Source: Pelomyxa schiedti
Lineage: Eukaryota > Protista > Evosea
Length of the DNA stretch: 64,000 nucleotides
Direction: 5' to 3'
Assembly: GCA_020536535.1 (NCBI GenBank)
Contig: JAHLWZ010000846.1
Location: 15,373 to 79,372, forward strand
Shown in pieces: positions 23,543 to 57,363 of the stretch; position 1 is the first letter of the stretch; the number at the start of each line of letters is the position of its first letter. Position numbers and translations under genes: made by a program. The notes under the pieces were generated by a model that saw nothing but the letters and a program-made list of their open reading frames with translations, did not search any database and was not told the origin of the DNA.

Positions 23543-26246
23543 CTAGGTCAGGGTTACATCTGTTCTTGGTCTTTTGGAACTCCTTTTTGGATTCTGTGCA
23601 GGACCAGGGGCGCTTCGTTTCACCTGCAGCAGGACTCCCTCGTCAGTTTTGCTGGTGGTTGATGTGCACTTGATGGCACCGTCGTTATCATTGTTTGCTG
23701 CCGCCGCGGTCGACGAGGGTGTGTTGGCAGGGGCATCATCGACTGTCATTGGTGCAGTAGCAGCTGTTGCCGGTGATTTGGAGAGGTTGGAGTGTGCCGA
23801 TGATGTGGGGGATACAGCCAACTGGCATTGTGCCAATGTGGGTGTGTTGTTGCACACAGGCTTCGTTTCTGGAATGATTGTGAAGTAGCGGTGCTGCAAG
23901 GCGGTGTCGACGCTCACAGCCTTTTTGATGAGCGCTTGACTGAGGTCATTCCCGTCAGCAGTGCGACAGGAGGCACTCACGTGATGACTGACCAGGAGTT
24001 CGCCAACGAGCAACAGGTCGGATTCAGGGCCACTGACCTCGCCGGGGTGATTGTTGAACGCTCTGAGGTGCTCCAGCGGCCTCCCTCTCTCAATCTCGGC
24101 CCACTCCAAATCCACCAGAACCCAGTGGCCTTGTTCACAATCTCGCATCACATTCGCCCAGCGAATGTCACAATGGAAGATTTCGGCTTCATGCAGCGTC
24201 TTCAATGCGCACAGTATCGCTTTGATGGCAGAGGCAAGGTCCACTTGGTTGACAGGCATGTCGTCGAAGCATGGTCTCATCTGGTAACTCACATCCTTGT
24301 CAGAACAGAAATACCCCGCAGCCTTGAATGCCAGATTTGGGTTTCGGCGGGGCAGGGAGGAGAGCCTGTTGTACACCGTCCGCAGGATGGCAACCTGCCG
24401 GGATCCTTTGGAGTTGTTGTTTTGGTGACCTCAATTTCACTTGGAGGAGGTCTCACCGAAATGCGGAGTACCGCACGTGACTCCGGTCGGTAAATGGTTT
24501 CAGTTTTCATGATGTGTGTCTTGTGGAGGTAGCAGGCAATGCGAACCATGTTGATGCTTGCGATGACAATTTGTGTGAAGTCCTGTTGGGCGGTTGTTAG
24601 CAGTTGTCTGGTAAAATACACTTGATACACGTAAATTCGGGTTGCGGAAATGCTCACACCTCAATACAGCTATGTAAGAACTGGTGACCACCAAAAAGAA
24701 CGATTGAGTCATGGAACTGTGCTCCCCGAGGGTTGTTCTTGTTTGTCGTAAGGACAAATTGCATGGCAGACTTGTTAGCTGCAATCCCAAGATGAAACCA
24801 GACACGGTTCCAGATAGGGAAGAATGTTGACTTATCCATAAGGTCGCCCCTTCCTTTTCCCAGCATTTCCTTTTTCATTTCAACTGTTTTTTTTAGAGGA
24901 ACATACCAGAGAGCATTTCTATCTGATTGAGTAAAAGGGATACATCAGGGAAAACAGAGCCTGAGGTTGATGGCGTTCGCCTATTAGTGCTGGTTGGATT
25001 TCCGCTACTGTGGCCCAAAGGAGGCTGTGGCACATTCCCTGTGGGTGAGCAACCAACACTTGTACTTGCCCTTGAGCTTGATTTGCTTGCATTTATTGAT
25101 GAATGATCCTTTTCTATGACGGCAACTTGGAATCTGTTTGTGTCACTGATAATACATTCCAACTCTTTCCAAAGTCCTTCCACAAGCTGAAACTTGCGTT
25201 CTACTGTGCCTTCAGTGCCAACAGTGTTATTAAAATCACCCTGTGCAATGCTGCCAAAAGATATCAGTGTGAAATGTCTCTACTTCATGAAAAATTAAAA
25301 TATATTTGCCACCCAGTCAGGTGCGTGTTTAAAACCTGTTCAAGAACTTAGCTATCTTGGCTCCCAGACGTTGGTGCCCATGTGCAGCGTCCTCGATGCA
25401 CCAAGGAGGTTCAAGAAGCTTGCAACTGCGACCCTCGGCCGAAATTGACGACAGTGAGATGGGGATAGGAACTGGAAATTCTGATTTCAACAACTCCTCA
25501 ATGAGAGAGATCACTGCTGCAGGCGCAAGATACTCTTCCACAAGGTGATCTATTTTCTGTGCCGTTTCCGCCTCAATTATCAACAGCCTTTCAACCCAGC
25601 CAGAGAACCAGCTTTTCGACTCTACAAACCCCAGATTCAGTTTTTCTTTCTTTATAAAGACTGATATCATACCAGAAATGCTCCATACGGTTCTTTTTTC
25701 CTTTGCCCACACCTTGACAGCTTCAAGACTATTCAAACACCTCAGTTTGATGCGATCGTCCTGGATTGAAAAGAGATATTCTCTCAGATTTCTCTTCTCA
25801 CTCTCTGGCAGGCTGGAACTTTCAACTTGTAGAAGAAGAGTGGTGCATTTTTTGAACGCTTCTGTCTTTTCCTCTTCTTCTTCTTTTGCATAGGGAATCT
25901 CTTGTGTGCCTTTCTCTTTTGCGGCTTCTTCTTTTACGACGCGAATAACTGCGAGCACCAGCTCTTTATGCAAGTCTCTCCTTGGGGAACCGTTTCGGTA
26001 CAGAATGGGGTGTTGAATTACGTCAGGTAAAAAACGGTACAGATCACCGAGGGCGTCGACTTCACCGGCAAGAACCGACACGCACATATCTCGAACCACC
26101 AGTTGTTGATTGCTGTCAGGTGCAGCCGACGCAGACGCCGCAGCACTTGGTACGGACGATGCCATCTTCCGGTACTGCGGGGGTTTTTTTTTTATCGCGA
26201 TTGGCGATCGTACGGAGTGCCCGTTTTCGGATCCTGATCTGTTCAT
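23543..26246 (-). CDS. Crinkler-like protein: PD-(D/E)xK-type nuclease-like domain plus atypical kinase (possibly frameshifted)
   Basis: FPDVSLLLNQIEMLSVEMKK...GDLMDK (after a 23-nt intron), IVIASINMVRI, and kinase ALKTLHEAEIFHCDIRWANV...WVLVDLEWA. The junction near 24396-24430 needs either a weak-donor 35-nt intron or a frameshift. Joining of the 25329-26246 exon is inferred. Confidence 0.6.
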
Positions 26247-33043: not shown

Positions 33044-36000
33044 ATGGGAAACATCACTCCCCTGCGTGCGTCGACGTCCTCGCCCTCGAGGCCTCGCTCT
33101 GGAGCCCTTTCTGGCATGAGCCTGGTGACCGTGGCGACGGTGATGCTTCTAACGGCCGGACTGAGCCGATCACAGACCACGCAGTGCAACGACGACTGCT
33201 CGGTGTGCGGGGGGTACACGCCCACGGCGGCCCCGACGACGTCGGCGACGTGGGCGGTGGCCAAGGGGTCGACCAAGATGAACGTGACGTTCTCGGTGTA
33301 CTACACTGGGTTTGGCATAAAGTGCCAGCCAAACGGCACCAAGCTGTCGACTGTGGCGCAGTTCAAGATCGAGTATTCGAGGGGATCTCCGACCCTGGCG
33401 TACCTGAATGGCACCGCTACAACGAAAGCGCTGGATTTGTATGGCCACAGATCCGTGGGTACGACGCAATAAACAACAATCTCTATTTATAGGTTTTTGT
33501 TTTGTTATTCATGTTTTCGCTTTTGGTTTTTGTTTTGTTTACCTTAATCTTTCCCCTTTTATGTTCTTGCCTCACAAAAACTTTGTGGTGCAGTGAAGCA
33601 ATTATCAAGTGGAGTTTATTGGTGGCATGCTGCACCGATGCCAATGAAACTGTTAGAATTTTCTATGAAAACCTAAACTACCCTAAATAACACCTAGGAT
33701 CGGCTGTACCGACCTTGTTCCTGCAAACAGTATCATAAAGTTTAGCTGTCCTTACCCGTCATACATTTGGAGTATTTCGTACGCATACGGCTTTAAGACT
33801 ACCCCACCTACTTGTTCAACACCTAAGTCAGGCCCAAGTAAGTTTTTTTTTCTTTTGGGTTAAAAGAAATCATTCTTGTAAGGTTATTGTGGTAGTATCA
33901 GTTCTGCAATCTCCACCGCTTGTGTTGACCCTAAGAATACATCATGTTCATACAAACTTGTGGATACTGGACCGTGCCATGCAAATGAATTCAAACATGT
34001 CTTCATTTCCTATCGGTGTTCTGGCTACCAAATCCCAGCTTCTGATACAATACAAAGTTTCTGTATTCTGGCATATCCTTCAGCACCAGGAATAAGCAGT
34101 CCAACTTCTGGATCAGTTTTATTTGTGTGTCTACTCCTGGTCCCCCTTTTTTTTCTAAAATGATGCCTTTAAGACGCGAACTCTTCTCTTGAAGTGGACG
34201 GTACCTAAGACTATTACCCCCTGTCCCAGCTACAAAATTCTTTATGATGTAAGCTACTCTTTCGTAACAAAATCTGGCAACACGACAAGAACACAAAAGG
34301 GTGTAAATACAACATCCCTACTTGTTTCTTTTTCTTCTGATGGTGTTTGCTTCTGGGTAAGGAGCTCACTCAAATTATCTTGATGCCAATCTTTGATAGA
34401 ATGTGACGGCCGTGGTATATCAAGGGTCGGCGCAGACATCAACATCTTCCTCGATGTGGAATTTTACATTGACTTCTCCCCAGCCACCAAACCCTCCCCG
34501 CCAAATTTACCCCAAAGATGGAGTATATCAGCCAGAGAACCCACCACTACTTAAATGGGGAATGATGGATGGCAAGTAAAGTCTCACCCTTCAAATCTAC
34601 TAAATTTCAAAGGTCCAAGTTGCCCTGCTGGGTTTTCCTTGTTCTGGCCAAACTTAACAAGCCCTGTTTACTGCTACAAATTTGTGTTTGAACCGCGCAC
34701 TTGGAGCAGTGCCAACCATTCCTGTCATTCGTATGGAGTGGATGTGACTCTGGCATCATTTTTATCAGCTGAAGAGTTGACTTTCGTAAAATCCTCCATT
34801 ACTTACAATGGAACGTTTTGGATTGGGCTTCATGACATTCAGTAAGGTGATTTTTACCAACTTTACTTATTTTTTAAGGCCTGAGGGATCCTTTTCGTGG
34901 CTTGATGGCGCCAGTGTTACGTATCTGCCTCCAGGAGGCGTAAAGGGATTCAACAATGATAGTTACGATTGTGTCTCTGCTTCTACATTTGATTCTGACT
35001 GGTATGTCGGCTCTTGCAGCAAATCTATGTTTTTCATTTGTAAACAAACTGGTAGTACAATGTCACTAGAGGTTTACTTTAACGTGAAATAAGGTTTCAA
35101 TCTGAATGTTCCGGCCTATCAGTCCTGGAGTGTTTACCTTGGTACTGCTGGTAGTACACCAGCACTGATTGCATCTGGGTTGCAGTATCCCTGGTACCAA
35201 CACAACATTCCTCTCCAAGACGGTGTCTATAATTGGTATGTTGTGGCAAACAACACCCAGTATCAAACACAATCCATTTCCACATTCAACTTCACGTACT
35301 GTACACCTTCACCACCATGGCCGTTCTCTCTGTTGACTCCTACTCCTGGTCAAGTCTTTTCTTTGCTGAACATGTCGACTTGCAACGTTACCTTGACTTG
35401 GGCAATACCCACATTTATGGGGCAAAGTTGTCCAGGCACAGGTTTGCCATTCGAGGTGTCATTCCAATTTACATTCATTGAAAGATGGATTTTACCATAT
35501 ATACCTTGATGACACTTTTCTGGGAACTACATTGGGCAATCAGTTGAGTGTAGTAGTAGCGACATCGAACCACACATGGTACGTTACTGCGGATAATAGT
35601 GCACTTCAAAGGAACTCCTCTAAAGAGTCTTTTCTGGTGTGCACTTCTATGCCCGAGGGAACACCAAGTCTCATTTCTCCTTTAACTGGAGACATATTTA
35701 TTATTGGGGAGTCTCTTCAGTGGGCCCCAGTGAGCTTTGGATATAATTGCCTTCCATCAGTGAAAGTTCTCATGCTGTGGTACAGCCGAAATATAAGCAC
35801 ATACAATGATACAAGGGCTTGGCTGTCTTTACCTTCTTCAAATGCGACCTTCTATTCTCCATCTGACCTCAGTGGAGGCACTTTTTACTGGGCCGTCAAG
35901 GCAAGCAATTCTATGCTCAGCCCAGTTTCTTATGTGCAAAATGTTACTGCCTGCAGCTACCAAAAACCCAGTGAGCCACTACTTTCTCCCGAGTCACCCT

Positions 36001-39000
36001 ATGAGACTACCTGGAGCAATGTAACTCTTGAATGGCAGATAGCTTCTTGTGGGGAGTCTTGTGCAACACCACCACTCTGCAATGTCACGGTCATTTTTAA
36101 CGGCACAGTCGTCTGGGCAACAGCCCCAACAACAGGCTCTTTTACTGTGTCAAATTTAACTGCTGGAGATCTGTGGTGGTACGTTTATGTTAACAATGGA
36201 CATCTTGAAAATGTGGGTGTGGGCAGTGTTTCTTACACTCCCCCTGCTCCGCCCATAACCAACACAACTGTTGCTGTGAATAAAACTGTTTCTGTCAATT
36301 CAACAGTCACTGTCAATACTACTGTACCACTCAATACAACCGTGACAGTGAACTCTACCGTTGCCATGAATTCGACTGTTTCCGTCAATCACACGGTTGT
36401 TATCAACGCAACAGTCTCTGTAAATTCGACTGTGACGGTGAACAAGACCAAAACTGTAAACACAACTGTAGCAGTAAATGTCACTCACACTACTTGGGAA
36501 TTGGTACCTGTAAACTGCACGGAGAATGTCACGATCTCTGTTAATTGTAGCGATGGTTCTCAAAAATCAGTGCTCTGTGCGAGCAACGGGACCATCTCAA
36601 TCAACTGTACTATGGTTATAGTTACCCGCGAAAATGTTACTGTGACTGCTAATATCACTGTCGCTGAGAACTCCACAATTTTGACTAATTCAACAATTCA
36701 AGTGAATAAAACTGTGACAGTAAATGAAACTGTAACCAAAAATGTAACAGTTATTGTGAACCAGACAGTGACTATCAATACAACTGTTCCTGTCAACCAA
36801 ACAGTAGTAGTAAACACTACAGTGCCCGTTAATCAAACAGTAGTTGTCAATGGAACCCTGCCTGTACTGTGTAACTGCACTCCTCCTGACGTGCCAATTT
36901 TATCCACTCCAGTTAATGGGTCTTATTTTCTTAGTACCCAAGTCACTCTGGAATGGGGTTCAACTTACAAGTCTTTTGGAAAAACTTGCAACGCCTCTAA
37001 TCTCAAGCAATTTATTGTTGAATGGCGTCAGGATGGCTCACAACACTGGAATTCTTCCATCTCATATGGAAAGACAATCACTAATGATTTCGCCCCTGCA
37101 TCGTGGTGGTGGCATGTCATAGCAAATAATGGAGTCCTCAATTCTACTTCAGAAGACAGACTCTTCCTTACATGCCTTACTTCAACACCCAAGCCACCTC
37201 AAAATTTGGCTCCCGCGGGTCTAGTTCTGGGAGCACTACCAGTTACTATTTCGTGGGAGTCACCAACTGATTGGGGGATTTCTTGCAAGCAAGCACAGTT
37301 CTTTTCGTTGATTTTCAATGGAGTCTCTCTCAGCTTCTCTTCTCAGACAATGCAATTTGTATCGTCAGTAACAGTAGGTACACTAAATAACGTTTCTGTG
37401 GCCGCATGCACAATGACGAAGTGTTCCCCAAGAATTTACTCCGCCTTTACATACTGTGTTCCAAGTGAGCTAAATGAAGCTCCGAACCCTCTAGAACCCG
37501 CAACTGGAGAAATGGTTCAAAATAATGCTCCTATCTTTTCCTGGAAAGCTCCGTCACTTGGGATTGTATGCACCAACAGTCACTCTTCATTTGTTGTGTT
37601 TGTTCTGGGGAATTCAAAAACATCAGAGGTCGTACTAAACACTACATTTAGTATCAACACTACTTCCTACGTTCTTGCCACGCCTTTACCTGATTTGTCT
37701 GTTGAATATTACTGGAGTGTTCAATACTTTAATGGAGAAAAATATACGCCTGCTGCCCTGAGCACATTCAGCACATGTAGTCACCAGCCTCCTACGTTGC
37801 CTGTCCTGCAATACCCATGCAATGGATGCACACTAGATTACACTAGTGTTATTGAAGTGGGCTGGTCCCAGCCTAGTTGTGGAATCACTTGTCCATACAA
37901 TAAACCATGCAAAACAATTTTATTCCTCAACAATGGAACAGTTACACTGACTGCACTACCACCTTCTACCAGGTTTTCCTGACTTTGTCTCATCCCACTG
38001 TTGACTTTATACAATCGCAGTTATACCGTTTTCCCATCTTTTGAAACAGTTGAAGGAAATGTGGTTCTATCACCTGGAAATTGGAGTTGGAGAATCGCCG
38101 TTAATAATACCGAAATACATGTACGTTTTCCAGATCCCTTGTTACAGAGTGTAATGTGGTTAAATTCTAGGTTCAAACAATTCCCAGTGTGTTCTTTTTG
38201 TGTAAATCGCAGCAGCCTTCTCCACCCACTCCTCTCTTCCCTCCGTCTGGATCTGCATTTTCCCAACTCTATGTTTATTTTAATTGGACTGTTCCGGCTT
38301 TTGGGAAGAGTTGCCTTTCTGAATCTGAAAATGTGATGACCTTTATGTTGATGAAGCTTGGAAGTGATTACCTTTCCGCAACAACTCTCAGTGTTCCATT
38401 TACTTCATTGAGACTCGAAGAAGGTTCCCGACAACTAGCTCTCCTTTACTCACAGTAACACAGGCAGTTATGAGTGGTGGCTAACTTCCTCTAACGGTGG
38501 CATGGAATCAGAAGAATCAGCGCATTTTTCTTTTAGTCGTAAGTACATCATGTTTTGTTATTTTTCACCCCCATGCCAGTGTGCATCCCCAAGGCCCCAG
38601 GTTACCCTGCCCTCGTATTTCCTTTAGAGGGAGAAATGGTTCCTCTTGATAGCCCTGTTGTGATAACCTCTCTTTATGACTGGGGTACCGAGTGCCACAA
38701 TAATGGACCACGCACATACAAATTATTCATAACTGAGCAAACTTCGTCCTGGCCTTCGGTTGAAACAGATTTAATATCACATGAGGATAACATGCCGGTA
38801 CATTTGGAGTTTAATGCTGGGAATTGGAGTTTAGATCAAACGTATATCCACCACTTTGCTGCTTCTTCTCCTCACAATGCAAATCAGATACTACTGGAGA
38901 GTTAGAGTAACCAACACGGTATGACACTTACAAGGGTAGAGGTCTTCTAATTCTTGTTAGGAACCCATCCAAGCAACAACCGATTACTTTCGGTTTACTG

Positions 39001-41090
39001 CTTGCGTACCATGGTCCCCAGTAGCCCCAACACTACTCTTCCCCGTTGATGCTTTCAACGTTTCCTATTCAGAGAAAATACTCTTTGCTTGGAGTACAAT
39101 AGCCACATGGGGACACATATGCCCTTCTGACGGTTATTCTCTGACCTTGCAGTTCATTTTAATGGCAGAGATCGGTATGTAATACCTCCAAAAAATTGAC
39201 TTAACCTTATGAAGAGAACTCCACCAATACCTGGTCTGTTATTCAAAATGCAAGTGTTCTTCCATCTGCGACATCGACATTGGCACCAGTTGCGTCAGGC
39301 ACCAACTATTCATGGTTCTTGGTAATGTCAAATGGATGGGAATCTGTGATAACTCAAATTGCCTTCTTTGGTACCACAAAAGAGTGTGTCGTATATATCA
39401 CTCAACTACCGTACTTACAGGCAGTTTAGTCCCTGCTCAAAAATTCTTTGTGTCCGGGGAACTTGTGTTGCCTACAGCAACGGTACTGTTGATTGCCTGT
39501 GTTACCCAAATTGGCATGGAGATTCCTGTGATAAAATGGACAGTGACGCTAAAGGTAACAGTGGCTCCACAATGCAACACCCAACCAACCTTTTGAGTAG
39601 AAGGAAAAAAAAATATGAGACTTCTTGGCCTTGTTGCCGTGCCTGGACTCCTAGTACCTGCACTCTTGGGAGCTGCAGTATTTGTACTTTACAGAAGAAA
39701 ACGCCAAGCTAGGTTGCGCTTACAATACTCCAAAATTAGCAGATTACGGTATTTCAATCAGTTCTCCCAGTTTCTATAACATCTTGGTGGGCAGATTCTG
39801 TGAAGTTAAACGTTTGTATGAGGATGACACACTACTGGAATCTCATAAAGACGCCGTGCGGGAAACTTTGGTACTGAGTTTTCCCCTTACCTCTAGTAAT
39901 GTTGTGCAGCTTAGAGAGGCAGAAGACGGTTCTTGGACTACATTGAAAAGCGTAATTCGAAGCACAGATATTACTCAACTAGATAATCTTGCTAAAAGCG
40001 CAGTATATTTCTTTGAGCGGCATGGAAAGGGATTGGATATGGTGTGCCTTCTGCCGAAATTGTAGTGCGAGGTTTCTTAAGACAATTTCAGATGCAATTT
40101 CTCATCACTGACGAAGTGAGAAATTGCAAAGAAGCCATAGCTCTATTCCGAGCAAATAGCTTCTCAACCAAAGCTTATAAGGTGTGTAGTACAAGGGCAA
40201 GCAATGGGTACTTATTCCGTAAAGTTCTACTCAAAAATGGTTGGACTTTCATACCTTTTCCAAACTCTTGGAGTGTTATTTGAAGATATTTGGCGCGAAG
40301 CCGCTAATGAAGAGGTTTTTTCCTCCTCAACTTAGTACTGTAACTTACAGGTTTCAGGAAATGGGCAGTATCACCAACGGAAGCGTTGAAATGATCCAAA
40401 CGAGCTATGAAGTAAATCCTGAGACTATGACGGAAGAAGTTGACGAATCTGTCAATGCACTTGCTGTAAAACTTGTTTGCACTAAATTCCTTATCCAAGT
40501 GGCACTCTCCGCAAATCGGGTTCCTCTTTCCTTACGTCAAATATGTGCTACTATACAAAAAGAGGTTAGCAGCTGACAGCAAAAGCACTCTTCTATTCTT
40601 ACTTACACTCTAGGTTTCTTCTACACTACCCGAGTACACACGACAGTCCCTTGGTGCCTTCTTCTTCCTGCGTTTTATCAATACAGCAATCTCTGTTCCA
40701 GAGGGGTGTGGTCCCCACTGATATCGTATAAAACAACAACTAAAATGTCTATAGCTATGGACTGCTGCCAGAAACTCCACCAGAAAATATTCGCAGGCAA
40801 CTGATAGTTATTTCCAAAATACTTCAGAACTTGGCAAATGGAGTAAAATTCGGTGACAAGGAACAGTTCATGATGAAGTTTAATGACTTCCTTGAAGACA
40901 ACGCTGCGAAGCTTCTCAAGTGAGCCTTTCAACATTTTTTCCTATGAGTAATGACTGATTCTGCAGGTTCTATGAACAATTGTGTTCCCCCGGCCCTGGA
41001 ACAGTAGAACCCATTGAGGTACCTGATGACTATTATGAGCCCGCTCTCTTGGTACTCGCGTACCACATGGATTCCAAGGCAAAGCTTTGA
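33044..41090 (+). CDS. Receptor-type RasGAP: signal peptide, C-type lectin, Fn3/Ig-like repeats, N-glycan hexapeptide hairpin, EGF, TM, RasGAP
   Basis: Kozak-like gccaccATGG and a hydrophobic signal; CTL about 34615-35045 (CPAG..CYK..TW..A..SC..WIGL..W.DG..DCV..W...C....ICK); recurring F..C..P..P.L..P linkers and Y.W.V.A.N strands; EGF CVRGTC...CLCYPNWHGDSC; TM LLGLVAVPGLLVPALLGAAVFVLY-RRKR; RasGAP LFRANSFSTK, GAFFFLRFINTAISVP and ISKILQNLANG. Exons at about 33440-33900 are uncertain, so single-gene continuity at the 5' end is inferred. Confidence 0.75.
36261..36860 (+). repeat. Coding hexapeptide repeat N-x-T-V-x-V: two arms of 13 units flanking a 4-Cys core
   Basis: Counted from the translated ORF 35478..37982. 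Confidence 0.9.
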
Positions 41091-53560: not shown

Positions 53561-56500
53561 TTACACACCAAACGTTGGGTTCTCAGTGGGGGAGGGAGCG
53601 TGGATTGGCCAGTGGACAGAATCGAGCTGTGATACCAGGGGCCCGGTTGTAAATCCCAGCCTGTTTGTGAAGAAGTTGAGTGAGGGGTGGGACGTGGCCA
53701 CCGAGCACAGCTTCCTTGGGTTGCCAACAACTTGCTTCATAACGCTCTGCACAAGCATTGTACCGATCCCTTGCCGTTGGTATTTAGTTGATACTGCCAC
53801 TTGGTACAGGAACCTGGATGGGGGTTAGAGAGAGTTGGTGTGTGACCTGTAGTGTTGTTGTTATTGTTTTTTGTTGGTATCATTATTATTACCCTTTTGG
53901 TGGAAAAGGAGTGGGATAATATTGATTTTTGTAGTGCCATGGTTTTTTTTGGGTGACAAACCATGGGTATTGGGAGGCCATTGCTTTCCGGGATTCTTCA
54001 ACCAGGCCGACCATTTTTCTTGTGTGGGACATGACATTTTTTGGAGAAACGGGCAGTATCCTGCTCTCTGGTGGGCACAGTATTACAACAGCAATAAGTG
54101 AATCCCGTTCCATGAGAACAAATAACATCTAAAATCAATTGGTAAGTTGTAATCATGTGTCACAGCACCGCACCCAAGATGAAATTTGTGTAGTCAATAG
54201 CTTTTTATAAAAAGCTGCAGCTTTTTCATTCCCTTTTTTCCCCTCCAAGGAGCGCACACCACCAGTGAATTGTTGTTTGAAAAATTCGTCTGTCTGTAAT
54301 GCCTCAATCAACAAGTCGACAATCTTTCATTTTCCAGGATTAGAGTGCAGAATGGGAGAAAGAGTACTTACTTTCAACACTATACCCTTCAGAACCACGT
54401 GTTGTGTTATTTTTCCCTCTCTAGAAATAGCATTTATGCCTCCGAAGGGTCTTTCTTGAGCTGAAGGGGTTAACAAAACCTCAGATGATGTAAACCTCTC
54501 GGAGATGATCATGCCCTCAAAGGGTCGTGAGGAAGATGACGAAAGTGATATCGAACGAGTGGGTGGTGGGTTACGCTCGGGTGATGGGGATACAACGGAG
54601 TTGTTGTGTGAAATATTAAGGCATGGTGTGGAGGCACTAAGGCTGGACGTGGGTGGTGATGCTGATCCGGCGGAAGTTCTCAATTGAGAAACCCGGGCAC
54701 GAACTTCTGGAGGGCTTGATTGTTGTGGGGGACTTGTCGTTCCTGGCGTTCCAATGAGTGGTTCACTTGCTTTGAGTGGAGTTGATGGGTGGGTGAGCAG
54801 ATAGGGATCACATGCCTTGGTGCCTGACCTCATAGTTTGTGTTGTATACAGTGATGGGACTGGGGGTTGTGGTTGTCTCGGTGGTGGCATCGTGTATTGA
54901 GATGGAGGATGTGGTGCCACTAGAGTCTGAGGAGTTGACATTGAATACTGGGAAGAAGGGGGATGAGGGACATACTGTGGAGGCTGGATGTTGTATGTTG
55001 AAATAGGTGGATGTGGTGAAAGGGATTGCTGAGGTGGCATGGTATATGTTGATGGAAGTGCTTGGAGTGAAGATTGGGTTGATGAGGAGGGTTGTGATGG
55101 AAAAGAATTTGCACCAGATGTTACTAAAGAGGACTGGTGAAGGAAACTATGCAAAATCCAATCTTGAATAGCCTGGATTTTGGCTGAGGGATCTTCATTG
55201 AGATAGCCATTCAGCCACTGTGTGATTTGTCGAAAAGGCGGCCTGAAAAGAGGTGAACATTTCCTTACAGAAGGAAACGGTACCTGGAGGAAGTTGGCAT
55301 TGCCCAGCACTTTCGAGAGACAAGAAATGAGAGTGTGCATCAAGGAAAAGGAGTTCAAAGCGCACACCTTTAACATGATCTCATAGATTGGTTGTGGACA
55401 AGTATCGGGACAAGGGAGGCGTTGCCCTTGTTCTAGAAATTCTATTACCTCCACCACTCCAGCAAGTTTGGAATATGGCAAAGCGCACTGAGTCCACATC
55501 TAGTGTGCATTTAGGTGCTGCTTTAAAGGAGAAGATAATCAACCTCCCACATCACAACCCCGAAACTGGAAGATTTTAGAAGAACAACTTTTTAAAAAAT
55601 ATTGGCTGTACCTCCAGACATCAGACTGTATAGTACATTCATTGTCCCTAATCCATTCCAAAGCACACCATCTAAACGGCATTACTCGGGTAGATGGTCT
55701 ATAGACATTATCAATCAATACACGACCAAGACCGAAATGTTAGAGTGGTTAAGGATATGCAAATGACACGTTCTTTCATTGACGAAGGAAATAAAGGATA
55801 TCTGCTATCTGCCAACTGTTAGTTTCGCGAGGATGAAAATCGAACACACTTTAGCACAAATACTCTTGTCTTCAAATTTGTATAGCACATTGCGGCATGC
55901 TAAGTCTCTGTTTGAGAAATTATGCTTAGTTTCTTATCCTCCACTTTTAACCAAGATATACCTGTGAATAATTGGTGGTTGGTGAGTAGACAAATACTCC
56001 ATTCCAGAGCACGCATCCTTACAGTGTGTTAACTTCCTCTAGAGGATAAAGAAAGAAAAACTTTGGCAATCTTAGCTAAAACTTCAGATGAAGGGTGAAA
56101 TTTTTTAATCAATTGATCAACTGATCCCTCAGCGAGTTCAGTTACAATATATTGTTTTTCATTGAATACAGCTATTCCTACGGAGATTCTGAGTGTACAC
56201 TTGACAAACTTCGTGCCTCACCATAAAAAGAGACAATATTGGGGTGCCGTAAAGCTGCTAATAAATCCACCTCACGACTTAACTCGCGGTATAAATCACT
56301 GTCATGGAGCTCTTTCATCGCAACAGGTGTTGCTTCACCCCATTTGCCTCATTGTGAAGTAAGTTTCTGAACAATTATAGTGACAACCAAACCTTTCCAA
56401 ACCTATTTTAGAGTGTGAGATAGATGGCCTGCTGAAGTGATAACAAATTACTTTGCCAAAATTGCCACTGCCAAGCAAACTCTCTGGTACAACATCAGTC

Positions 56501-57363
56501 AAAACAGATGTCTCTGCAGATATTGTTTTAGTGACTTGCTGCTGCTGGTTCAAGCAAAGGGTAACATAGGTTCGAATTTTTCCTCTCTCCCCAAGGTTTA
56601 CACCCTAAGAATGTCAGGCTTTTGCTTTGATTCTTTTCTTTGTCATACAAGAGAATTATAGTTGTCATCCGTCAGTCCATTCATGGAGGCGACAGTATCC
56701 AGTCCTTGTTGGAAGAAAATCTTGGAAGGATAAGAAATCATATAGAAACGGGGCATACATTGGATAGTTCTATGGCCCTTTGTTCCGGTATTGATATATC
56801 TTTGAATATTCTCTCCAAGTCTGCTTGTGACAAAATTGTTGTGAAGCCAAAAACATAGCTCAAGGAGGCCACACTGTATCTTTGTCAGTGCGGAGGGGAA
56901 AAAAAAGAAAAAAGTAATGATAATAATAACCACTAACAACGTGGACCACTGACCTTAATTGCCTCGGACTCAGCGACCCAGTGGCACCACTAGAAGGCAA
57001 ACCAAGGGACAAACTCGACAAGTTTGGCAATCCCAAGCTACGCGGCGACACCGCTCCCCCGCCCCCGCCTCCTCCTCCCCCCCCGCCGGTCCCCAGCGCC
57101 CCGCCGCCTCCCCCTCCCCCCTCGCCGTTGAGGCTGCCGCCTGCCCCCACGCTCGAGGACGCCGGCGCGGTGGGCGAGAGGAGCAGCGAGGGCACGAACG
57201 CGGGGGAGCGGCCGCGGGCAGGCGGCGGCGGGTGCGGGCCGTAGGCCGAGGCGCCCCCGGTGTAGGACGACGTGACGACGACGCTGGGGGGCGTGGTGGG
57301 CTCCGTGGACAGGGAGGGGGGCGACGATGCCCGCGTGTTGGTGGTGATGTACATCGACGACAT
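53561..57363 (-). CDS. SAM domain - tyrosine kinase - Pro/Ser linker - GNAT acetyltransferase fusion
   Basis: SAM LTDDNYNSLGVNLGERGKIR; kinase LGSGNFGKVWKG, VAMK, LRHPNIV, IIHRDLACRNVL, KIADFGLGR, MPFRWCALE and SDVWS; GNAT FLYQVAVSTKYQRQGIGTMLV...LNFFTNRLGF. Phase-compatible introns join the linker to the GNAT. Confidence 0.8.
55739..55801 (-). other. U12-type (minor spliceosome) AT-AC intron, 63 nt
   Basis: 5' end ATATCCTTT, branch site TCCTTAAC (55755-55748) and terminal AC. Removal gives G+AT TTC GGT = DFG. Confidence 0.92.

Follow-up and report, generated by a model that had tools for sequence, protein, structure and literature searches.

The DNA analysed here, called the window throughout, is a stretch of 64,000 nucleotides (nt) from Pelomyxa schiedti (assembly GCA_020536535.1, contig JAHLWZ010000846.1, positions 15,373 to 79,372 of the forward strand), a species whose genome is available as a single-cell assembly (PMC8887013). 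Its plus strand carries a gene for a receptor-type RasGAP, and in the predicted ectodomain of the product we describe a mirror-repeat module of 202 amino acids (aa; window 36261-36866, translated in frame), which consists of 13 six-residue units (hexads), a core of 46 residues and 13 more hexads. An exhaustive search of representative proteins and a word-indexed search both identified the window's own product as P0001, whose annotation reads GTPase-activator protein for Ras. The protein begins with a hydrophobic stretch resembling a signal peptide, followed by a Cys-rich region, a C-type lectin, Fn3-like repeats, EGF, a transmembrane (TM) segment and RasGAP. Pfam places Lectin_C at residues 398-503 and RasGAP at residues 1979-2166, with weak matches for EGF and the TM segment, and the module occupies residues 880-1081. 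The features of the locus, all on the plus strand and in window coordinates, are as follows.

33044-41090, plus strand: whole gene for the receptor-type RasGAP, product P0001 of 2233 aa (match to P0001, Pfam, location of the first ATG and the stop, introns seen in RNA)
35483-37969, plus strand: single exon of 2487 nt that contains the module (RNA joints 35439>35483 and 37969>38018)
35952-36239, plus strand: Fn3-like repeat before the module, P0001 residues ~777-872 (collinear with the equivalent repeat of the paralog P0002; visible repeat pattern)
36240-36260, plus strand: Pro-rich entry linker PPAPPIT (translation)
36261-36494, plus strand: N arm, 13 hexads N-x-T-V-x-V (translation; all 13 Asn and Thr retained in the paralog P0030)
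36495-36632, plus strand: core or 'knob' of 46 residues, comprising WELVPV, four 10-residue Cys units, the CSDG turn and MVIVTRE (translation)
36633-36866, plus strand: C arm, 13 hexads N-x-T-V-x-V (translation, comparison with P0030)
36867-36878, plus strand: LCNC after the C arm (translation, paralog comparison)
36876-37175, plus strand: Fn3-like repeat after the module, P0001 residues 1085-1184 (phmmer matches to P0002, P0003, P0013 and P0016 on query residues 293-406)

Because the signal peptide, the TM segment and the cytosolic RasGAP define the predicted topology, the module should lie in the extracellular, or endoplasmic reticulum (ER)-luminal, part of a type-I membrane protein. The initial annotation of this DNA, made from the letters and their translations, had set the module between two Fn3-like repeats, and this placement holds. 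The repeats that flank the module form units of about 95 residues. Pfam fn3 gave no match on the window protein itself; the downstream repeat matches residues 439-547 of bacterial P0013 as well as bacterial P0003, and since Pfam calls fn3 at P0013 461-538 and at the equivalent repeat unit of P0003, the label 'Fn3-like' is justified. Receptor-type RasGAPs with Fn3-like repeats, EGF, TM and RasGAP make up a small family, which includes at least three paralogs in Pelomyxa as well as a Rigifila ramosa (CRuMs) relative, and the C-type lectin is found in the Pelomyxa members.

Anatomy of the mirror-repeat module

The hexads had been described at the outset as strict N-x-T-V-x-V units, exactly 13 on each side of the core. 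The count was borne out, and so was the strictness of the first-position Asn (Asn1) and the third-position Thr (Thr3), each present in 26/26 hexads of the P0001 module. It did not extend to positions 4 and 6, which are Val in 21/26 and 17/26 hexads, respectively, and the hexads adjoining the core (N11, N13 and C01-C03) are the most degenerate. As first reported, four Cys lie 10-10-10 residues apart around a central SDGS: their codons, at 36516, 36546, 36576 and 36606, are spaced by exactly 10 residues, each near the start of a 10-residue unit, and CSDGS stands at the centre of the 33-residue Cys segment between WELVPV and MVIVTRE. The estimate of about 31 N-glycosylation sequons in some 200 aa was also accurate. 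We counted 31 in 202 aa (30 NxT and 1 NxS), a density of 15 per 100 aa, against 44 in the 1664 aa of the remaining ectodomain. The composition of the module is dominated by Val (25%), Thr (24%) and Asn (15%), and Pro makes up 2.5%.

We looked for larger periods in the protein and for repeats in the DNA. In both paralogs, neither arm showed a significant 12-residue super-period (p 0.23-0.57), and an 18-residue super-period was not found (p 0.84-0.95). At the DNA level, Tandem Repeats Finder (TRF) reported no tandem array at the module, the 18-nt units have a mean identity of just 55-58% with their Asn, Thr and Val codons scrambled, and a search for an inverted repeat at the module found none. 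Together these results reject a recent tandem or inverted DNA duplication as the origin of the arms. The hexad pattern itself is confirmed as far beyond chance, with no recent DNA repeat behind it.

Directly after the C arm P0001 has a CxC motif (Cys1083/1085), the first Cys of which occurs solely in the two module-bearing paralogs, P0001 and P0030. Comparison with the bacterial repeats identifies the second Cys as the conserved N-terminal Cys of the following Fn3-like repeat. The idea that the module is a closed loop insertion, sealed by pairing of a post-module Cys with the preceding domain, was considered and rejected as a firm argument, as this second Cys belongs to the next repeat. The predicted ectodomains hold 61 Cys in P0001 and 63 in P0030, both odd numbers, and 52 in the module-less P0002. 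An odd count together with the extra CxC Cys could be compatible with a free or intermolecular Cys, a reading that depends on the gene models.

Transcription and splicing

The plus-strand frame that encodes the module is open from 35397 to 37979 (861 codons), and the module region is present in two single-cell RNA-seq runs. In one, an RNA contig of 4600 nt is unbroken across 35807-37969 and then skips downstream GT..AG introns of 40-50 nt; in the second, a contig of 707 nt covers 36329-37034. Because the 4600-nt contig skips a series of short GT..AG introns, it represents spliced mRNA. Removal of the region from the mRNA had been named at the start as a way in which the module could prove illusory, and the data go the other way, with the module left unspliced in a contig that splices the neighbouring introns.

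Several further observations concern the transcripts and the surrounding DNA. Between 35439 and 40222 of the window, RNA contigs of runs X3 and X4 define at least 14 GT..AG introns of 39-50 nt, and the assembly-derived runs X1 and X2 contain no joints. Upstream, an RNA contig skips 41 nt at window 34571-34612, with ends that the tool labelled GG..AA and 2 nt of slack. If the cut is moved by 1, the segment becomes a GC..AG intron (donor G|GCAAGT) in agreement with the annotated protein …MMDG|PSCP…, and a GT..AG alternative near this site would shift the frame; the skipped segment is probably a non-canonical GC-AG intron. Inside the module, the run X3 contig departs from the assembly at 36506 (A>C) and 36779 (T>C), both at third-codon positions, the first a synonymous change (Val GTA>GTC). 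These two differences look like allelic or strain variants. Elsewhere in the window, the list of open reading frames includes a candidate Crinkler-like kinase at 23543-26246 and a candidate tyrosine-kinase at 53561-57363.

Conservation and origin of the module

The sole other carrier of the module that we found is P0030, a paralog of 2238 aa encoded on a different contig of the same genome and 64% identical to P0001 overall. Its name in the source record, 'succinate dehydrogenase', is a misnaming. The P0030 module has the same 13+46+13 layout with no indel relative to P0001, and it retains the four Cys at the same spacing and the CSDG turn. Hexad sequons are conserved across the two proteins in 52/52 cases, each paralog has 31 sequons in its module, and 29/46 core residues are identical. 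Identity within the hexads depends on position, as listed here for P0001 and P0030.

Hexad position 1: 26/26 identical
Hexad position 2: 17/26 identical
Hexad position 3: 26/26 identical
Hexad position 4: 19/26 identical
Hexad position 5: 9/26 identical
Hexad position 6: 15/26 identical

Synonymous sites between the two genes are saturated (proportion of synonymous differences, pS, 0.65-0.72), so the duplication is old and the similarity does not reflect gene conversion. Nonsynonymous divergence (dN) in the module, 0.23, is below the 0.30 of the folded repeats beside it, which means that purifying selection on the module is at least as strong as on its folded flanks. Equality of the arms in homologs had been named as a check. 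The only homolog keeps them equal, at 13+13, and with one ancestral state shared by both proteins this equality does not amount to co-variation in length. The third Pelomyxa paralog, P0002, is collinear with P0001 on both sides of the module and has six residues, GKIEIG, in its place, and P0016, a family member from Rigifila ramosa, is likewise without the module. The module is therefore a lineage-specific insertion in an inter-domain linker.

No relative was found outside this pair. An exhaustive search of 1.84 billion representatives gave no module homolog beyond P0030, and the other matches were weak (E 1e-6 to 1e-3), all of them low-complexity look-alikes that have no Cys core. Shorter homologs of fragment size (223-710 aa) were also sought, and none was found. 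With Pfam at E<=10, run on the module alone, P0001 and P0030, the module had no match to any family, Hexapep included, and a Pfam scan of the exon likewise gave nothing at the module; a search of PDB sequences with a two-sequence profile produced just a low-complexity match to a repeat in a LIM-domain protein; and the ESM Atlas held no credible neighbour (best score 0.81, below the useful range). The initial annotation could assign the module to no named family, and among the databases searched it belongs to no known protein family.

The look-alikes, metagenomic proteins P0011/P0026, P0020, P0027 and P0012, contain runs of N-x-T-[VI]-x-x hexads. They differ from the module in that their matches, at E 1e-5 to 1e-3, are compositional, with neither a Cys core nor demonstrable homology. 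P0011 (residues 137-335) and P0026 (residues 133-373), possibly archaeal, have one Fn3-type domain flanked on each side by a run of about 5-7 N-E-T-x-x-x hexads, a layout of arms around a tip that could be a convergent design in an unrelated protein. The Atlas model of P0011 is poor (predicted local distance difference test, pLDDT, 0.52).

A probable beta-structured, glycosylated stalk

Very probably the module is a functional, beta-structured and densely N-glycosylated stalk, with its stiffness, sequon occupancy and beta structure all inferred. In both paralogs the sequons are of the functional type (N-x-S/T, x not Pro, in an ER-luminal segment), and the related Entamoeba histolytica has an oligosaccharyltransferase that can be assayed (PMC2064103). 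Across the hexads of P0001 and P0030, Pro occurs at position 5 only (8/52); it is at sequon position x in 0/52 hexads, and there is none at positions 2, 4 or 6. Its absence from x fits selection for usable sequons.

The arrangement of the arms offers clues to how they may be related in space. The spacing between them, from the translated coordinates, is 46 residues. As this offset is even, in any hairpin about the core odd hexad positions would lie opposite odd ones, and even positions opposite even ones. One face would then have Asn1, Thr3 and x5, and the other Val4, Val6 and x2, which agrees with the even periodicity and one-sided glycans proposed initially. In both candidate registers Thr3 is opposite Thr3 and Val6 opposite Val6. 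The limitation of Pro to position 5 fits a ribbon in which odd positions are non-hydrogen-bonded. Because there is no 12- or 18-residue super-period, every hexad sits in an equivalent environment, and such equivalence would suit an uninterrupted ribbon or a helix of three-fold symmetry, not a strand-turn meander.

Structure prediction of the module with its flanking domains, proposed as a check by the initial annotation, gave a partial answer. AlphaFold2 on Fn3-module-Fn3 as a single sequence reached a mean pLDDT of 37. For the module with the two-paralog alignment the mean was 39.6, and the core alone (model residues 93-131) reached 64-75. Strands in the alignment-based model (76-100, 104-109, 115-120 and 124-148) are exactly mirror-symmetric about model residue 112, the D of the SDG turn. 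Judged from strand limits and not from coordinates, they lend weak support to a single unbroken hairpin with strands of about 35 residues. The nested C1-C4 and C2-C3 disulfides of the initial annotation fared worse, as the register of the predicted core is one hexad off the register in which C2-C3 and C1-C4 would pair directly. The model thus weakly favours a hairpin nucleated at the core, not the nested disulfide scheme.

From these results we propose the following mechanism. The module would have arisen in one lineage of the gene family, taking the place of a six-residue inter-domain linker. The strand would be extended, so that in each hexad the Asn-x-Thr sequon points one way and a Val-x-Val stripe the other, and the equal arms would run antiparallel and pair, with the 46-residue disulfide-bonded core as the tip. 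The flanking Fn3-like domains would then stay adjacent while a glycan-coated rod stuck out sideways by up to roughly 25-30 nm. The Val face would need burial, perhaps through twisting or coiling of the ribbon or through pairing with a second copy in a dimer. An antiparallel fold-back, glycosylated stalk with a disulfide-core tip is, tentatively, the best explanation as a whole; the mirror architecture, the even 46-residue offset, the degenerate core-adjoining hexads, the Pro parity and the lack of a super-period are all consistent with it. Taken separately, the claim that the arms interact in antiparallel fashion to form a side projection tipped by a disulfide knob is finely balanced, and we place it slightly on the doubtful side. 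That the module is literally a single two-stranded ribbon appears unlikely.

Several points weigh against this fold-back reading. Arm pLDDT is below 40 in both AlphaFold runs, and the two runs draw the arms differently; the initial proposal of a ribbon of about 100 residues per strand is consistent with the mirror layout, the offset, Pro at position 5 and the symmetry of the predicted core, and the low arm confidence counts against it. The centre of the SDG turn is 3 residues off the centre defined by the cysteines, which, in the register given by the strand limits, do not face one another. Substitutions at mirror-paired arm positions show no significant correlation (r=0.34, permutation p=0.13, from two sequences and thus uninformative), and the correlated-substitution peaks simply track the 6-residue period. 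Equal arms are one evolutionary observation, as P0001 and P0030 share an ancestral module, and indels are rare across their whole alignment, so that zero in 202 residues is not significant alone. We know of no solved structure of an isolated two-stranded ribbon of this length, and such a ribbon leaves its Val face exposed. The glycans, finally, are themselves predicted from sequons, as is their occupancy.

Alternative explanations

The strongest alternative, possible though on the unlikely side, is a linear N-glycan 'bottle-brush' spacer. Here the arms would stay apart and the Cys core would be a knot in mid-chain; glycans and beta-branched residues would hold the chain extended, add as much as ~60 nm to the length of the ectodomain and push its lectin-bearing half off the membrane. 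Such a spacer would accommodate an insertion in the linker of a beads-on-a-string ectodomain, the 15 sequons per 100 aa and arms to which AlphaFold assigns no confident fold. Glycosylated repeat stalks are, moreover, a common solution among surface receptors, and bacterial periscope proteins are one example (PMC8201768). However, a disordered stalk exposed to solvent would not be expected to conserve alternating Val (positions 4 and 6) so strongly, the composition, with 2.5% Pro, is unlike that of mucins, and anciently diverged paralogs keep the same repeat number. The mirror layout and equal arms are also left unexplained.

We consider it quite unlikely that the arms are beta-solenoids, for example left-handed beta-helices with three hexads per turn, in which Asn and Thr form structural ladders instead of serving for glycosylation and the Cys core joins the two short solenoids. 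The hexapeptide motif of the left-handed beta-helix is [LIV]-[GAED]-x2-[STAV]-x. The unit V-N-x-T-V-x loosely resembles it, left-handed turn positions favour Asn, and the hexads are equivalent, like the three faces of such a helix. Nevertheless, neither Pfam Hexapep nor any other family matches at E<=10 and there is no relative among PDB sequences, 13 hexads are a multiple of neither 3 nor 2, and the expected 18-residue periodicity was not found. Occupied sequons stacked every 4.8 A would presumably clash, and their strict NxT form, the lack of Pro at x and their position in the lumen all suggest occupancy.

A compact two-sheet sandwich, which we strongly doubt, would make each arm an amphipathic beta-meander, with the two sheets packed by their Val faces and the glycans on the outer faces. 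Sheets of equal size would follow from arms of equal length, the Val stripe would be buried without a partner molecule, the low-confidence AlphaFold N arm consists of 8-residue strands with a 12-residue period, and within each arm Pro occurs at hexads of one parity. Yet the 12-residue super-period is significant in neither arm of P0001 or P0030, arm pLDDT is below 40, and 13 hexads would make 6.5 strands. A functionless low-complexity expansion, or an annotation artefact of intronic or untranslated sequence, is hardly credible even though the module has so far been found in one species, given that it is kept in spliced RNA, its frame is open for 861 codons, dN is well under the saturated synonymous divergence (dS), and Asn and Thr are retained in 52/52 hexads despite scrambled codons.

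Comparison with known stalks and significance

In kind the module is probably a glycosylated repeat stalk without a sequence family, distinctive for its strict periodicity and mirror symmetry. Like mucin-like stalks rich in Pro, Thr and Ser (PTS), it is a repeat-built, heavily glycosylated segment between folded ectodomain modules, which presumably stiffens and extends the protein. Those stalks are O-linked, whereas the module is predicted to be N-linked through strict NxT and has an alternating hydrophobic stripe. Its 2.5% Pro, 25% Val, fixed repeat number and a dN lower than that of its folded flanks are likewise at odds with a mucin-like PTS segment.

The fold-back stalk of streptococcal antigen I/II pairs an A-region helix with a P-region polyproline helix and carries the V domain at its tip. 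By analogy, it would be the nearest architectural counterpart of a fold-back stalk with matched arms, in that repeat arms of matched length surround a tip; for the module, the antiparallel pairing is proposed, which would bring the chain back to where it began. The two differ in that the antigen I/II arms, an alpha-helix and a polyproline II (PPII) helix, are of different sequence, whereas both arms of the module consist of the same beta-type hexad. The module tip is merely a 46-residue Cys knob, and the sequences are unrelated.

Hexapep (PF00132) shares with the module a six-residue period with an aliphatic residue, then a turn-prone one, and a small or beta-branched one four positions on. 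V6 and V4 match positions i and i+4 of the motif, but i+1, the Gly/Ala/Glu/Asp position, is always Asn, every hexad is a sequon in a secreted domain, and there is no match to the hidden Markov model (HMM). The periscope proteins SasG and Aap are single-layer beta-sheet rods (PMC8201768, PMC9999234). These are similarly long, thin beta rods without a conventional hydrophobic core that hold a lectin-like head off the cell surface; in contrast to the module, they are built of domains of ~50-130 residues in variable copy number, are not glycosylated and are not mirror-symmetric.

We also note a bolder proposal, which we think rather improbable. The module may be a free-standing, N-glycan-coated beta ribbon of ~25-30 nm, either two-stranded or, where two receptors dimerise by way of the Val faces and the additional Cys after the C arm, four-stranded. 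It would double as a built-in, multivalent glycan ligand bound by the family's C-type lectin domains and so couple lectin-glycan self-recognition to RasGAP signalling. If this were true, a free-standing glycan-coated ribbon of this sort would have no solved precedent.

The significance of the module is limited by its being known from two paralogs of one species. Dense, strictly periodic arrays of N-glycosylation are rare compared with O-glycosylated mucin stalks, and the module is a compact, natural and conserved example, with 26 sequons of identical phase arranged in mirror symmetry about a knob with predicted disulfides. From it one might learn how a rigid rod outside the cell is built from N-glycans and beta-branched residues. 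Paired arms would, in addition, make it a beta ribbon of unusual length and a new scaffold on which glycans can be displayed. For Archamoebae, the module is a lineage-specific innovation in a little-studied family of lectin-RasGAP receptors.

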